From NCBI RefSeq assembly GCF_006345805.1, contig NC_042998.1, forward strand, positions 90,892,001 through 90,956,000: a stretch of DNA of 64,000 nt, in the 5' to 3' direction. Shown here piece after piece: positions 4,408-63,200 of the stretch. The DNA is from Octopus sinensis (Eukaryota). Numbering within the stretch: position 1 is the first letter of the stretch; the number at the start of each line of letters is the position of its first letter. Both the position numbers and the translations under genes were made by a program. The notes beneath the pieces were generated by a model, which was not told the origin of the DNA, ran no database searches, and worked only from the letters and a program-made list of their open reading frames with translations.

Positions 4408-4421
4408 TTATCTGCCTTCAA
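4408..4421 (-). CDS. DDX39B: DDX39B terminal coding exon
   Basis: tttcag|TT GAA GGC AGA TAA gives (I)EGR*; the phase matches exon 8 and vertebrate UAP56 also has a short last coding exon. Confidence 0.85.
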
Positions 4422-7400
4422 CTGAAAGATAAAAAAAATATATATTGCATTATTAAAATTGTTTAGATAGTGAGGAAAAGAAATTATTAAATGATAACAA
4501 TTAAGTTTTACTTACTGTATGAAGATATGTCTATTTCATCAGGAAGTTCTGTGATATTGACTTCAAATCTGTCTTGAACATCATTTAAAACTTTGGCATC
4601 ATTTTCATCTGAGACAAATGTAATAGCCAAACCTTTTGTTCCAAATCTACCAGCACGGGCAACCTATTATTAATATGAAGATATCACTAAAATTAATAAA
4701 GTTGTAAAATTGAAAACGTCTTCAAAAATCAACAAAGTTGAAATACTTGGAGAAATGTGTAAGATTTCCAGCTATTTCAAAGAGAAGAATTTATCAAATA
4801 CTACATGGATTTCATATATTCCAAGAGGTTTAATGCAGAATCTCTTAAATATGTCAAATTAAAAGATGGTGAGCGCATCTGTAGTAACAAGTAAATTAAC
4901 TAAATATTTAGATTGGAGCTTGATTTTGTGAATAGGAAATTCACTCTTCTTTGTCAGTTAACAGCCTTTGGAGACGTGAATGTTCTAAAACCCCTTGAAG
5001 CACTTTTATAACAGCATTTATGCCGAGTCAGAGAGAATAAATTCAAAATTTTCCTAGTAGTCATACTCATCATTCCCATTATCATTGATTTAGGTCATAA
5101 TGGAAAAAGTTGATTATAATTTTTAAAAATAAGGTACGATTTTTCTTAAACCAGGTCTAGATCTTTCAAAAGACAATATGGTCACTAGGGTCGTTATTCC
5201 CAACAAACATTATTGTTGAATTTAATACTTTATCTGCCCTTAAAGCACAAGCAGCATTAGTATTTGTTTGAGATTATTAGCTGCAGTAGCTTGATTAACC
5301 CTTCTCATATCAACCTCTCAGAGACAGTCCCCAATATATAATACAATGTTTCTGTTTAGAACGATCTGAATTAAAACCTATCAAAATTACAAATTAATAA
5401 AGACAAAGTTATGGAATTTTATATTAAAATTGCTATTTGTAAAGCATTCTAGAGACATGTGGACTCATTAAGCTAGAGTAAGGGGCAACCTATCTGAGAG
5501 CAGAAATTCTTTTGTCAGAAACAGAATAAAAATATGTTAGCTTTCTCTGCTGTTGTCTATCTCAGATAACAAAGGACACCAGCAAGGAGCAAGGCTTTTG
5601 TTGAACACAAGCCAAAACAGAAAAATGTAAATAAAATGATGTACAGAATGAAATAACATTCCTTTAAGGGTTGCAAATGGCAGTCCAACAAAATATGTTA
5701 ACAACAAAAGATAAAAAATTAAGATCTAAGATGATCAAATCTTTAAAGAAAAGAAAAATGTCTTCACTCACTCTATGTAAATAAGTATCCGAATCATCAG
5801 GCATATCATAGTTGAAAACAATATTCACTCTTTCAATATCCATTCCACGACCAAAAAGATTAGTTGCCACTAAAATCCTTTTCTGGAAGTCTTTAAACTG
5901 TTGATAACGCGATAATCTGAAAACAATAACAGTATATAACGTATAATAGTATGTTCATATAGTAAACTTGTGAACTGGTTCACATTTATTTTTCATGCTA
6001 GAATATGTAAAACTTGTGCAAATTTAGACATTTATATATTATTAGAACAATCTTTTGCTCCTGAAGTTACACAACAAAGATTGCATAACAAGGATTATAT
6101 GCATTCATAAGGAACACAACACACTAGCTGCAGTAAGGTTCAAACTCTTAATCATTGGGTCAGTAGTCATTCAGTTTCACTTTAATCTTTCAGTCATGTA
6201 TAGCAGCGCTACTCAAAGTGGTGGGCCACAAGCCATCAGCTGCCAGTACATGGCAAGTTTCCAGAAAAGAAACACAAAATGCTTATGTAATATTGTGGTG
6301 TTTACAAAATTAAACACAAGATAAAAAAAAAATTGTCAACTTTTATCATATTCATTATATATATTGTTTCTGGTATAAATTAATATTTCTAAGAAATATT
6401 ACCAGTCTCTGGCACACTGGAAAAAAAAACTGCTGGTACACCACATCAGTTTGAGAAGCACTGATGTACAGTATATATAATCATATTTAAATATAGTTGA
6501 TCTATTAATTCAGTATTGTGCAAAAATCTGAGCAAAACTTGAAAGCCTAATGCCACTTAAAAGTAGAAACTATCCTGGAACACCATATAATCCAGAGCAA
6601 GTAGAAGTACACTTCACCTTATTATACAGACTACTTCTACCAATGGCAATTCCTGCATCTCCAATCTAGACTTATCAATTTTCTACATTAGTTGTATTAA
6701 CTTAATCTTAAAAGGCCTAATTTCTCATTAGATCAATAATTTGTTTTATACCAACTTAACAGTTAGTTTTAGATTAAATGCACATTTGAATCAATTTTTC
6801 ATTTAAACCCCCCACCACCACACTACTAATGAAGTTTCATTCACTTGAAAGACAAAGCAAAGCCCAAAATGAGTAGAAATATTGGGTAACATCTCAAGAA
6901 TTACAGAAAAAAAATTCACAATTCCATATGGTTATATTAATAAATAGTTCTAAGCATGAACCAAAAGTAAACAAGAAAATAGTCAGTATGCTCCTATTTT
7001 TCTGTTAGAGAAAGGCTTTTTTTTTTTACTATAGCAACATTACTTAGTGATAGAGACTGTCTGGGTAAAATTGATCGCTAAGTTTTACAAACAGGAAAAA
7101 AAATCAGCATTAAAAATAAAACCCTCTCCATAACTGTTTCTTATAAGCAGTTGAAATTTAAGAGCCTTCTTTCTTGCTTTGAAATATTGTTAATGCTTTA
7201 TCTTTCCATTAATGGTTTCACCTTATTGAGCATATCACCCACATTTAACTACATAAATATAAATTTGGCAAAATGAATGCTTCCAAGAGCAATATCAATC
7301 AAATATAAGAATTGGAGAGAGGTAAAAATAAAACTAACATACCTTTCTTCTTGAGTCATAGCCCTATGAATTGCTATGGCAGGGAAGTTTTGTTCAACAA

Positions 7401-62600: not shown

Positions 62601-63200
62601 TAAAGCAAATGAAGCAACTAGCTCAATTTTTGCTGATTGTGATAATGTTTGTTTTTGTAAACTTTTATGAAGCAATACTAAATTAAGAATATCATTTCTT
62701 GTTCTCTTATTTAAATAGTCAATATATTTCTCTCTCTCTCTCTCTTTTTTTTTTATCTTACTGTGTTTTATTATGGGCAGTGTGCATGTACTTCTAGCTT
62801 TCATTGCTGTCTTTCTTTATGGGATTTATATGTCCGTTTTCTGTCTCCTTTTTTAATATTTCCTGATGAGTTATGGTGTACCTGAGCACTGTCTACAATA
62901 AGCTCGTTATTATTATTAAACTGTTTTTGCATTTTATAGTGATATATGTTGCAAGACATGCATAAAATTAGTACCAGCTATTTGTTTTGTTCTTATTGAA
63001 GATTAATTTCCAATGTTACTTTTTAATTTTCTCAGGCATCGCATGAACGGTAAAGCAACGCTGTGGAACCCTGGTTGTGACCATGCAGGTATTGCTACAC
63101 AAGTTGTGGTGGAGAAGAAAATTTTTAAAGAACAGGGTATCACTCGACATGAACTTGGTAGAGAAAACTTTCTAAAAGAAGTATGGAAATGGAAAAATGA
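50433..63200 (+). CDS. VARS1: Valine--tRNA ligase (cytosolic type), 5' part; the gene continues beyond the window
   Basis: Exons 50433-50603, 59549-59624, 61025-61128, 61636-61760, 63036-63200, with consistent phases. Motifs: [52 protein letters not shown] (HIGH motif), [18 protein letters not shown]. Confidence 0.95.
52560..54745 (-). mobile_element. 5'-truncated RTE LINE (frameshifted RT) with SINE-like 3' region and (GAT)n tail, in VARS intron 1
   Basis: [66 protein letters not shown]; the 3' region carries GGCGTTAGGAAGGGCATCCAGC. Confidence 0.92.
58925..59510 (+). mobile_element. tRNA-derived SINE(s) ending in a (GAT)n tail just upstream of VARS exon 2
   Basis: GGCTGTGTGGCTAAGAGGTTTGCTTCCCAATC head; GGCATTAGGAAGGGCACCCAGC core; ttaaatgatggtgatgatgatg. 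Confidence 0.75.
59549..59624 (+). CDS. VARS1: VARS coding exon 2
   Basis: [25 protein letters not shown]; tatag acceptor and G|gtagg donor. Confidence 0.88.
59998..60200 (+). mobile_element. tRNA-derived SINE (V-domain-like), degenerate
   Basis: GGTCAGTGGTCTAGTGGTTAGG head; GTGTCCTTGAGCAAGACATTTCATTT. Confidence 0.6.
61025..61128 (+). CDS. VARS1: VARS coding exon 3
   Basis: [35 protein letters not shown]; donor GTAAGT. Confidence 0.93.
61636..61760 (+). CDS. VARS1: VARS coding exon 4 (HIGH motif)
   Basis: [42 protein letters not shown]; donor GTTTGT. Confidence 0.93.
62370..62601. repeat. 63-bp inverted repeat with a spacer of about 105 bp in VARS intron 4
   Basis: 62370-62432 pairs with 62538-62601 with only about 3 differences. 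Confidence 0.9.
63036..63200 (+). CDS. VARS1: VARS coding exon 5
   Basis: [55 protein letters not shown]; donor GTAAGG. Confidence 0.95.

Follow-up and report, generated by a model that had tools for sequence, protein, structure and literature searches.

An ancient microsyntenic block of DDX39, BBLN, PTGES2 and VARS genes in the Octopus sinensis genome

The analysis of a 64,000-nucleotide stretch of Octopus sinensis DNA (hereafter, the window) outlined a run of four genes, DDX39(-), BBLN/UPF0184(+), PTGES2(-) and VARS(+), the last of them represented by its 5' part only, that are also neighbours in distant lineages. The adjacency of these non-paralogous orthologues across deep lineages goes far beyond chance expectation, and the arrangement constitutes a conserved ancient microsynteny. 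In all likelihood, this is an old block whose four genes are unrelated and widely required, organised as two divergent pairs, and which would have persisted through the 5' spacers shared within each pair and would have been split up in the vertebrates.

Gene content of the window

The window is part of Octopus sinensis chromosome CM016860.1. Models for all four genes were built by joining stop-free segments at GT-AG junctions (Table 1); of the four, the public annotation of the stretch gives only VARS, PTGES2 and UPF0184. The rebuilt models confirmed the gene order and strands proposed in the first-pass annotation, and the limits it had set were exact: the DDX39 stop codon finishes at 4408, and the VARS exon nearest the window's end finishes at 63200/63201. 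Its claim that no further protein-coding gene lies between the four was likewise borne out, the intergenic matter consisting of transposon remnants only. Long ORFs within or between the genes corresponded to a retroelement (RT, RNase H, integrase) or to a LINE RT fragment, or presented no Pfam match, and scans for intron-hosted RNAs detected no Rfam family and no tRNA. The tail-to-tail interval separating BBLN from PTGES2, where the 3' UTRs of both genes should be located, contains no gene in the public annotation, and the ORFs tested in it had no Pfam match. By eye, an ORF at 33723-34070 (-) resembles the C-terminus of a Tc1/mariner transposase; a Pfam search with this ORF returned no match.

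Table 1. Coordinates of genes, spacers and the retroelement remnant in the window
Feature	Position	Strand	Details
DDX39 (UAP56/Sub2-type DEAD-box helicase) CDS	12232..4408	-	9 exons, 426 aa
DDX39 exons	12232-12025, 11383-11256, 10268-9992, 9743-9625, 8274-8143, 7452-7343, 5916-5772, 4663-4516, 4421-4408	-	
DDX39/BBLN head-to-head spacer	12233..13361	.	1129 bp, start codon to start codon
BBLN/UPF0184 (bublin coiled-coil protein) CDS	13362..17209	+	exons 13362-13488, 17031-17209; 101 aa
BBLN-PTGES2 tail-to-tail interval	17210..23565	.	stop codon to stop codon; repeats present
PTGES2 CDS	39987..23566	-	6 exons, 402 aa
PTGES2 exons	39987-39673, 36096-35881, 30594-30395, 28755-28543, 25919-25805, 23715-23566	-	
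PTGES2/VARS head-to-head spacer	39988..44850	.	PTGES2 start to annotated VARS start; enlarged by retroelement insertion
Decayed LTR-retrotransposon remnant	41048..44587	-	pieces in shifted frames: RT, RNase H, integrase zinc-finger, integrase core
VARS (valyl-tRNA synthetase) 5' part	44851..63201	+	gene runs past window end
VARS annotated upstream coding mini-exon	44851-44879	+	29 nt; spliced to 50426 (public model)
VARS exons from conserved start codon 50433	50433-50603, 59549-59624, 61025-61128, 61636-61760, 63036-63201	+	

The orthology of the four genes, as proposed in the first-pass annotation, is supported at the sequence level by Pfam domains, matches to sequences of solved structures and identity to annotated proteins. 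The DDX39 model is 100% identical to an Octopus vulgaris protein named DDX39B by NCBI, and its best match among solved structures is human DDX39B (854 bits), with DDX39A (786 bits), yeast Sub2 (595 bits) and the next DEAD-box paralogue, eIF4A (261 bits), scoring lower. The model presents the Pfam domains DEAD and Helicase_C, as well as the motifs [15 protein letters not shown] and ARAGRFG. Using as determinants a DECD motif II, GKT, SAT and HRxGR-type motifs, and DDX39A/B as best match, it can be assigned to the DDX39/UAP56/Sub2 family. The label DDX39B given to it at first pass holds for the DDX39 family but not for the specific paralogue: invertebrates have one DDX39, of which this is the octopus copy, and it is a co-orthologue of both DDX39A and DDX39B, so that DDX39B is in this case an annotation name only.

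The predicted BBLN protein has an annotated octopus counterpart with 100% identity, and the annotated gene end agrees with the model. Its score with Pfam UPF0184 (PF03670), 55.5 bits, exceeds the cut-off of 21.5, which places it in the BBLN/UPF0184 family, here delimited as proteins of ~80-120 aa above the PF03670 gathering score. A homologue search with this protein returned octopod proteins only, so that BBLN could not be used as an anchor for the comparative analysis. Its orthologues were located beside DDX39 and PTGES2, and then checked by tblastn, Pfam and exact look-up. All seven BBLN proteins (octopus and six orthologues) match PF03670/UPF0184 and share the core EY..LN.TLDQLD.CL..LE in their alignment. 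Of the six rebuilt orthologues, five agree exactly with annotated proteins, and NCBI gives four of these five a bublin-like or UPF0184-like name. The small coiled-coil gene MCCD1, which in mammals lies beside DDX39B, was also considered as a diverged BBLN duplicate, a notion that found no support. The MCCD1-type family was absent even from the weak Pfam matches of the seven BBLN proteins, the literature search returned no paper connecting MCCD1 and BBLN, and in the cat MHC MCCD1 lies tail-to-tail with BAT1, not head-to-head.

The PTGES2 model is 100% identical, with full-length coverage, to the Octopus sinensis protein that NCBI names prostaglandin E synthase 2, and its gene range agrees with the public annotation. 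Residues 115-389 align to the mPGES-2 structure 1Z9H (E 5e-81), a CPFC motif and the Pfam domains Glutaredoxin and GST_N_3 are present, and those of its 798 homologues that bear names are PTGES2. The determinants considered for this family encompass an N-terminal hydrophobic/anchor segment, a CxxC (CPFC) thioredoxin/glutaredoxin-like domain, a GST-like C-terminal half and full-length similarity to mPGES-2; they identify the protein as a PTGES2 family member with predicted enzyme activity.

For VARS, a candidate class I valyl-tRNA synthetase of the cytosolic VARS1 type as opposed to mitochondrial VARS2, the features considered were the HIGH and KMSKS motifs, an editing domain, an anticodon-binding domain, the ValRS C-terminal coiled coil and a closer match to ValRS than to IleRS/LeuRS. 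The model in the window contains Pfam tRNA-synt_1, the HIGH motif in the form HLGH, and [13 protein letters not shown], and it matches the ValRS structure 1GAX with an E-value of 1e-34, versus 8e-07 for IleRS. The public model, of 1080 aa, comprises tRNA-synt_1, Anticodon_1 and Val_tRNA-synt_C, with KMSKS and the C-terminal domains located beyond the window. The Lys-rich N-terminal stretch of octopus VARS presumably resembles that of human VARS1. A search of the + strand from 44 to 50 kb, upstream of 50433, detected no GST-like N-terminal domain; all that the public model places there is the 29-nt coding mini-exon at 44851.

Conservation of the block across species

The comparative analysis showed that in the gastropod Lottia the four genes span 20.8 kb and match those of octopus in both order and orientation (checked by tblastn). 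All four are also adjacent in the brachiopod Lingula, arranged as <-BBLN DDX39-> <-PTGES2 VARS->, and in the nemertean Lineus, which presents the Lingula-type arrangement within 19.2 kb; in both, the BBLN/DDX39 unit is inverted with respect to octopus and Lottia. In the annelid Owenia, three of the four (DDX39, PTGES2 and VARS) are adjacent in the Lingula-type arrangement. In Argonauta and O. vulgaris, PTGES2, BBLN and DDX39 were found on contigs equal in size, and a damselfly, Hetaerina, has PTGES2 on a contig that differs in size from the one with DDX39.

Among deuterostomes, Saccoglossus, Ptychodera and Branchiostoma floridae present, of the whole block, only the head-to-head BBLN/DDX39 pair (in amphioxus, BBLN beside DDX39 was detected by tblastn with E 1e-13). 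Neither PTGES2 nor VARS was found within 10 kb of DDX39 in these three species, in which the genes flanking the pair are related to neither. Similarly, no VARS, BBLN or DDX39 was found within 10 kb of PTGES2 in Pecten, Liolophura or the ecdysozoans Limulus and Tigriopus, so the PTGES2|VARS pair can be broken up. Wherever the 5' flank of DDX39 was visible (seven species from five phyla), the 5'-5' orientation of BBLN and DDX39 is kept.

These results bear on whether the four genes could have met by chance during the genome reorganisation of the coleoid ancestor, their human orthologues lying on related paralogons by coincidence. Coleoids are known to have gained 505 lineage-specific microsyntenies through rearrangement (PMC9023564), and the block is absent around PTGES2 in the scallop and the chiton, yet the arrangements in Lottia, Lingula, Lineus and Owenia and the deuterostome BBLN|DDX39 pairs speak against such an origin. 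Furthermore, the probability that four named genes form one run is ~24/N^3 per genome (~3e-12 for 20,000 genes), and the recurrence of the same set in four other species hence rules out chance. The first-pass annotation had named a coleoid-specific shuffle, or non-orthology of the genes, beforehand as outcomes that would overturn its reading. Neither applies: the four genes stand as orthologues, and the comparison refutes such a shuffle, an origin that we regard as next to impossible. The same annotation had also deemed the survival of the block notable on the grounds that coleoid genomes are scrambled. This argument is weak, since Euprymna keeps 275 bilaterian-age microsyntenies, versus 216 in a scallop (PMC9023564), and with squid keeping ~275 ancient blocks it is less of a surprise than the first-pass annotation held that a coleoid should have retained this one.

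Divergent spacers and persistence of the gene pairs

Both octopus pairs, BBLN|DDX39 and PTGES2|VARS, are oriented 5'-5'. The CpG observed/expected ratio reaches 1.19 in the DDX39|BBLN spacer, against a window median of 0.27, and values of at least 0.9 are confined to two parts of the window, 12.0-13.2 kb and 39.5-50.7 kb, in the second of which most 500-base windows reach them. The CpG-rich stretches correspond to the two divergent spacers and the first VARS intron, the rest of the window being CpG-poor. In seven other species (eight loci), the DDX39|BBLN spacer spans 0.7-2.0 kb and is CpG-enriched over the locus median in all instances but that of Lineus (7/8); for both pairs taken together, enrichment was observed in 10 of 11 divergent spacers outside octopus. 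This enrichment is promoter-like and probably denotes unmethylated DNA, but does not in itself show bidirectionality. Bidirectional-promoter pairs are characterised by 5'-5' orientation, a spacer classically below 1 kb, a single promoter and correlated expression, and the DDX39|BBLN spacer may constitute such a shared (bidirectional) promoter region.

The distance between the PTGES2 and VARS starts in octopus, 4.9-10.4 kb, today exceeds the classical range of bidirectional promoters, whereas the spacer spans 0.35-1.3 kb in Lottia, Owenia, Lingula and Lineus. With the 3.5-kb retroelement subtracted, the octopus spacer would measure ~1.3 kb, matching the other species. Pieces of this element are matched separately by Pfam RVT_1, RT_RNaseH, Integrase_H2C2 and rve, and the element is flanked by direct repeats (41048-41220 and 44385-44587) that are ~71% identical. 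The octopus block has been stretched by transposons, among them the retroelement inserted in this spacer.

Taken together, these observations suggest that the members of each pair share a short, CpG-rich 5' spacer, putatively an unmethylated shared promoter region, in which a break would harm two genes at once. The pairs would persist because such a break would damage both genes, and the two pairs have remained mutually adjacent in several lophotrochozoan lineages. Passive retention, with few breakpoints falling in short spacers, would yield much the same picture, and the ancestral block could in principle have persisted through compactness and slow rearrangement alone, without any selective or regulatory constraint. 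The independent decay of the block in Pecten, Liolophura, Limulus and Tigriopus, and the survival of one pair only in deuterostomes, fit this explanation, which is harder to reconcile with the 5'-5' orientation of BBLN|DDX39 in every species in which it could be assessed. The inversion of the BBLN/DDX39 unit did no apparent harm, but its breakpoints fell outside the pair, which survived it. Similarly, the PTGES2|VARS spacer accommodates a retroelement, but the octopus block was kept despite a many-fold expansion of introns and intergenic DNA. The spacers are, moreover, short and CpG-rich, and a 5'-5' bias combined with short spacers is a published signature of constrained pairs (PMC3514665). 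We therefore consider unconstrained retention unlikely, and sharing of promoter regions the better candidate for the constraint.

Relation to the MHC paralogons and to known microsyntenies

In human, DDX39B and VARS1 lie in MHC class III at 6p21.33, and PTGES2 and BBLN are close neighbours at 9q34.11. The first-pass annotation had proposed that the octopus block reflects linkage predating the vertebrate 2R duplications, a proposal that stands directly for BBLN/DDX39 at the bilaterian level; adjacency of all four was observed only within Lophotrochozoa. The head-to-head BBLN/DDX39 pair, present in two hemichordates and amphioxus, hence predates 2R and is at least as old as the last common bilaterian ancestor, and the four-gene block is at least as old as the lophotrochozoan ancestor. 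A bilaterian age for the entire block is plausible given the human locations of the two gene sets, but unrelated genes flank the pair in amphioxus, Saccoglossus and Ptychodera, so that we infer, rather than observe, four-gene adjacency in that ancestor. The alternating order in octopus (6p21, 9q34, 9q34, 6p21) is probably derived, since the BBLN/DDX39 unit lies the other way round in Lingula, Lineus and Owenia; an inversion of this unit would have generated the order seen in octopus and Lottia. After 2R, copies of the block would most likely each have lost different members, leaving the partners on 6p21.33 and 9q34.11, and the simplest way for DDX39B (6p21) and BBLN (9q34) to have been separated is that different duplicates were lost. 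In the cat MHC class III, VARS and BAT1 are ~146 kb apart.

Membership in the MHC paralogons entails vertebrate orthologues on the 1/6/9/19 blocks and an invertebrate-chordate orthologue on the single corresponding chromosome. The standing of BAT1/DDX39 as a proto-MHC anchor gene, put forward at first pass, is accepted in the literature, where the gene is listed as such; no link of PTGES2 or BBLN to the proto-MHC was found in the literature searched. This anchor role could suggest a functional module, with the four genes co-acting in a pathway related to stress or immunity from which the MHC later grew, as could the neighbours of block genes elsewhere: ASS1 in Lingula, a SAPCD-like gene in Ptychodera and KIFAP3 in Limulus, whose human orthologues we take to lie on the 6p21, 9q34 and 1q paralogons. 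Paralogon membership is, however, expected of any neighbours derived from one ancestral linkage group, and amphioxus proto-MHC genes are spread over their whole chromosome, in macrosynteny without microsynteny. Moreover, DDX39 is an mRNA-export helicase, BBLN a coiled coil that organises intermediate filaments, PTGES2 a glutathione-dependent enzyme of thioredoxin fold and VARS a tRNA synthetase, and no pathway is known to be common to them. Such a module is thus very improbable, and the term proto-MHC denotes here membership of one ancestral linkage group by housekeeping genes, with no immune function.

A bolder version of the promoter-sharing explanation, advanced here only tentatively, would have all four genes as neighbours in the bilaterian ancestor, forming two promoter-sharing pairs and a fixed core of the later 6p21/9q34 (MHC) paralogons, with BBLN|DDX39 constrained, kept in every non-vertebrate lineage sampled and split only in vertebrates by virtue of spare 2R copies. 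If true, this would provide a clean natural case of genome duplication dissolving an otherwise locked gene pair, and would give reconstructions of the pre-2R proto-MHC a marker at the level of genes. The block joins genes of 6p21.33 (DDX39B, VARS1) and 9q34.11 (BBLN, PTGES2) as immediate neighbours rather than through whole chromosomes, which is sharper evidence for a common origin of the MHC paralogons than the usual chromosome-scale counts, and contrasts with the recent view of the amphioxus proto-MHC. In addition, BBLN|DDX39 offers a testable case of promoter-sharing constraint and of its release by genome duplication. Literature searches on the proto-MHC and on gene-pair combinations returned no paper naming the four-gene block, and the four gene names were not found in a part of the supplementary files of Schmidbaur 2022 (PMC9023564). 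Conserved microsynteny of housekeeping pairs is well described, with hundreds of examples, so the finding represents an instance and a useful marker rather than a new principle.

The proto-MHC paralogon (human 1q, 6p21.3, 9q32-34 and 19p13; one amphioxus chromosome) has in common with the octopus block the listed anchor DDX39/BAT1, VARS, which lies with BAT1 in mammalian MHC class III, and PTGES2 and BBLN at 9q34.11, but it is a chromosome-scale concept, whereas the block is a gene-to-gene linkage. The block also resembles the 275 metazoan microsyntenic blocks retained in Euprymna (Schmidbaur et al. 2022, PMC9023564) in comprising at least three orthologous genes common to a coleoid and distant phyla; that set is reportedly enriched in signalling and developmental regulators, whereas the octopus block is made up of housekeeping genes. 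Approximately 600 conserved ancestral microsyntenic pairs (CAMPs), mostly 5'-5', have been described and explained by co-regulation or promoter sharing (Irimia et al. 2012, PMC3514665), such as HSPD1-HSPE1, a head-to-head pair with a shared bidirectional promoter (PMC3514665). Like these, the block comprises unrelated genes that have been adjacent across phyla for >550 million years, mainly in conserved 5'-5' orientation and with short spacers. Unlike them, it consists of two such pairs adjoining one another, four genes in all, and vertebrates no longer have its BBLN|DDX39 pair, the two members of which they carry on different 2R paralogons.

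Gene and repeat content of the window

The window is AT-rich (G+C about 35%), with short exons and long introns. Diagnostic motifs in six-frame stop-free segments located three genes at once, placing the DECD motif of DDX39 at 9957-10268 (-), the CPFC motif of PTGES2 at 35875-36126 (-) and a 13-residue VARS motif at 61621-61821 (+). Gene models were then derived by per-strand segment reading and enumeration of frame-compatible GT-AG junctions.

Genes and mobile-element remnants in the window
Feature	Coordinates	Strand	Structure and Pfam content
DDX39	12232..4408	-	9 exons, 426 aa; DEAD and Helicase_C
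BBLN (bublin coiled-coil protein, UPF0184)	13362-13488, 17031-17209	+	2 exons, 101 aa; UPF0184 (55.5 bits, cut-off 21.5)
PTGES2	39987..23566	-	6 exons, 402 aa; Glutaredoxin/GST_N_3
VARS	50433..63201, then beyond the window	+	5 exons, 214 aa within the window; tRNA-synt_1 in this part
Decayed LTR-retrotransposon remnant	41048-44587	-	RT, RNase H, integrase zinc-finger and integrase core in shifted frames
LINE RT/PHD fragment	53770-54273	-	Pfam match, within the first long intron of VARS

In comparisons with solved structures, the helicase scored 854 bits with human DDX39B, 786 with DDX39A, 595 with yeast Sub2 and 261 with eIF4A, and these scores identify it as the single invertebrate DDX39, co-orthologous to vertebrate DDX39A and DDX39B. 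The first-pass annotation, which had named it DDX39B, was therefore right about the family and too specific about the paralog. The PTGES2 product matched the mPGES-2 structure 1Z9H (E 5e-81), and the VARS fragment matched ValRS at 1e-34 versus 8e-07 for IleRS. The PTGES2 model is identical (100%, full length) to the NCBI protein 'prostaglandin E synthase 2 [Octopus sinensis]', and annotated octopus proteins match the DDX39 and BBLN models at 100% identity. In the 36 kb around PTGES2, on Octopus sinensis chromosome CM016860.1 near 90.9 Mb, the public annotation contains only VARS, PTGES2 and UPF0184. Gene models, Pfam domains, structure matches and annotated proteins hence confirm the run of four adjacent genes reported from the sequence, including the coordinates of both its ends.

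The retrotransposon remnant lies within the divergent spacer between PTGES2 and VARS, where the CpG observed/expected ratio (o/e) is still high. It is flanked by direct repeats (41048-41220 and 44385-44587, about 71% identical), and neither gag nor protease was seen in it. The remaining long ORFs of the window had no Pfam match, and many of them belong to a single SINE-like or LINE-tail-like repeat family, with copies at 16.3, 26.4-26.9, 27.2-27.4, 31.3-32.4, 33.2-33.4 and 52.6-53.7 kb, on both strands and 74-84% identical to each other; this family explains the patches of high G+C around 26-28 kb and 52-54 kb. Two tandem arrays lie in a repeat within a PTGES2 intron: one at 26541-26829 (67-bp unit, about 4.4 copies, 76% matches) and one at 26877-27248 (123-bp unit, 3.0 copies), the latter recent, since its copies match at 99%. 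On visual inspection, an ORF at 33723-34070 (-) is similar to the C-terminus of a Tc1/mariner transposase, with no Pfam match at E 0.01. The first VARS intron carries a 192-bp inverted repeat (45902-46093 and 46819-47010, 98% identity, arms about 730 bp apart) of foldback-like or MITE-like appearance. Also in a VARS intron, a strong G-over-C skew was observed at 56000-58000 (+0.33 in a 2-kb window), along with G-rich ORF-like runs near 57.1-57.4 kb. Positions 1-4407, 3' of the DDX39 stop, yielded nothing gene-like, only short ORFs without matches, and a repeat at 2142-2302 recurs at 22921-23081. Rfam and tRNA scans of the window returned no family and no tRNA.

Conservation and age of the block

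The block consists of two divergent pairs, DDX39-BBLN and PTGES2-VARS, joined tail-to-tail. Orthologs of PTGES2 and DDX39 obtained from homology searches served as anchors in other species, flanks were retrieved to a maximum of 10 kb in either direction, and each fetched locus was re-checked by tblastn with the octopus proteins as queries.

Gene order at loci retaining the block or one of its pairs (arrows, direction of transcription)
Species	Gene order	Extent	Remarks
Lottia gigantea (gastropod)	<-DDX39 BBLN-> <-PTGES2 VARS->	20.8 kb	Window orientation; identical to octopus
Lingula anatina (brachiopod)	ASS1-> <-BBLN DDX39-> <-PTGES2 VARS->		
Lineus longissimus (nemertean)	<-BBLN DDX39-> <-PTGES2 VARS->	19.2 kb	Fetched locus is the reverse
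Owenia fusiformis (annelid)	DDX39-> <-PTGES2 VARS->		Fetched locus is the reverse; expected place of BBLN lies beyond its end
Saccoglossus kowalevskii (hemichordate)	<-BBLN DDX39->		Pair only
Ptychodera flava (hemichordate)	<-BBLN DDX39->		Pair only
Branchiostoma floridae, two assemblies (cephalochordate)	<-BBLN DDX39->		Pair only; the small gene upstream is a match to octopus BBLN (E 1e-13)

The order in Lottia and the adjacency of all four genes in Lingula and Lineus make the tight linkage older than the coleoids, and the four-gene block is at least as old as the lophotrochozoan ancestor. The chance of encountering four named genes in one run of four is about 24/N^3 per genome, so chance adjacency is not an option. 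BBLN and DDX39 were found head-to-head wherever the 5' flank of DDX39 was visible, in seven species from five phyla encompassing protostomes and deuterostomes, and this pair is therefore at least as old as the bilaterian ancestor, in line with the earlier reading of a pre-2R linkage. The BBLN orthologs rebuilt from these loci share a conserved core in alignment, and Pfam identified UPF0184 in all seven BBLN proteins. Five of the six rebuilt orthologs are exact annotated proteins, four of them labeled 'bublin coiled-coil protein-like' or 'UPF0184 protein-like', while the Lottia protein is unnamed. In the fetched loci of Saccoglossus, Ptychodera and Branchiostoma, the pair is bordered by genes that bear no relation to PTGES2 or VARS.

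The BBLN/DDX39 unit of Lingula, Lineus and Owenia is inverted with respect to octopus and Lottia. The brachiopod, nemertean and annelid arrangement is most simply taken as ancestral, in which case the octopus and Lottia order would stem from an inversion of this unit in molluscs, and neither breakpoint would fall within the pair. DDX39, BBLN and VARS were all absent within 10 kb of PTGES2 in Pecten maximus, Liolophura sinensis, Limulus polyphemus and Tigriopus californicus. In Haliotis, Liolophura, Tubulanus, Mytilus trossulus, Pinctada, Nucella and Argonauta, PTGES2 and DDX39 share a chromosome or scaffold, judging from the contigs of homolog matches; in Sinanodonta, Mizuhopecten and Hetaerina they are on separate ones.

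Vertebrate gene positions suggest that PTGES2-VARS already adjoined BBLN-DDX39 in the bilaterian ancestor. VARS lies about 146 kb from BAT1/DDX39B in the cat MHC class III region, and in human PTGES2 and BBLN are near neighbors at 9q34.11. Flanking genes were also noted: argininosuccinate synthase (ASS1) beside the block in Lingula (10-5971 of the fetched locus), a SAPC2_N/Suppressor_APC-domain gene beside the pair in Ptychodera (1-1371) and KAP3 at the Limulus PTGES2 locus (1-5668). The human orthologs presumably map to 9q34.11, 6p21.33/9q34.3 and 1q24, respectively, and, if so, these genes belong to the same paralogon set. A second Lingula scaffold (LFEI02000010.1) carries the same stretch from ASS1, BBLN and DDX39 to VARS, with only the last PTGES2 exon detectable and a Pfam-negative gene of 311 aa called in its place; possible explanations are a haplotig, a recent duplication and a copy in decay.

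Spacers and retention of the pairs

In octopus, the start codons of DDX39 and BBLN are 1129 bp apart. The PTGES2-VARS distance is 10.4 kb when counted to the conserved VARS Met at 50433, which is homologous to the annotated Owenia VARS start, and 4.9 kb when counted to the start of the public VARS model at 44851. The latter begins with a 29-nt coding mini-exon (44851-44879, +) able to splice in frame to 50426, adding about 12 residues before the conserved Met; no exon for a GST-like N-terminal domain was seen upstream. Without the 3.5-kb retroelement, this spacer amounts to about 1.3 kb. CpG is strongly depleted across the window (median o/e 0.27), and values of at least 0.9 are confined to 12.0-13.2 kb and 39.5-50.7 kb, corresponding to the DDX39-BBLN spacer and to the PTGES2-VARS spacer plus the first VARS intron. 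From their composition, these domains are probably unmethylated promoter domains between methylated gene bodies and repeats.

Conserved ancestral microsyntenic pairs have been described as unrelated genes kept 5'-5' across short spacers owing to shared promoter or regulatory DNA (Irimia et al. 2012; PMC3514665). BBLN-DDX39 and PTGES2-VARS may likewise be unrelated genes held 5'-5' by a common promoter or regulatory DNA, which is the best-supported explanation of their retention. It is favored by the conserved orientation of the pairs across species, by the short spacers elsewhere (0.35-2.0 kb), by CpG enrichment of 1.4- to 2.8-fold over the locus median in ten of the eleven spacers from other species, and by the same two-island CpG pattern in the octopus window. 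Against it stand the repeated breakage of the PTGES2-VARS pair and the retroelement tolerated within its octopus spacer. That the compact block persists neutrally, without constraint, is a serious rival explanation, though an unlikely one.

Relation to the proto-MHC and to known microsynteny

BAT1/DDX39 is an accepted proto-MHC anchor in the literature, and the four genes could be thought to form a functional proto-MHC module. No support was found for such a module: the products of the four genes serve unrelated housekeeping functions, with BBLN described as an organizer of intermediate filaments; amphioxus proto-MHC genes are reported as dispersed along one chromosome; and paralogon membership is expected of any neighbors derived from one ancestral linkage group. 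The literature search returned no paper tying PTGES2 or BBLN to the proto-MHC and none describing the four-gene block, which may be buried in the supplementary lists of systematic surveys, such as that of Irimia et al.

Conserved microsynteny is already well known as a kind of feature, with about 600 conserved pairs described across metazoans (PMC3514665). The first-pass annotation had considered survival of the block in a coleoid notable on account of genome rearrangement, but Euprymna retains 275 bilaterian-age blocks versus 216 in scallop (Schmidbaur et al. 2022; PMC9023564), so the survival of one such block in octopus is not in itself surprising. Compared with these known cases, its specific value lies in tying the 6p21.33 and 9q34.11 paralogons together gene to gene, and in BBLN-DDX39 as a candidate case of a long-locked pair split by reciprocal loss, as allowed by genome duplication.
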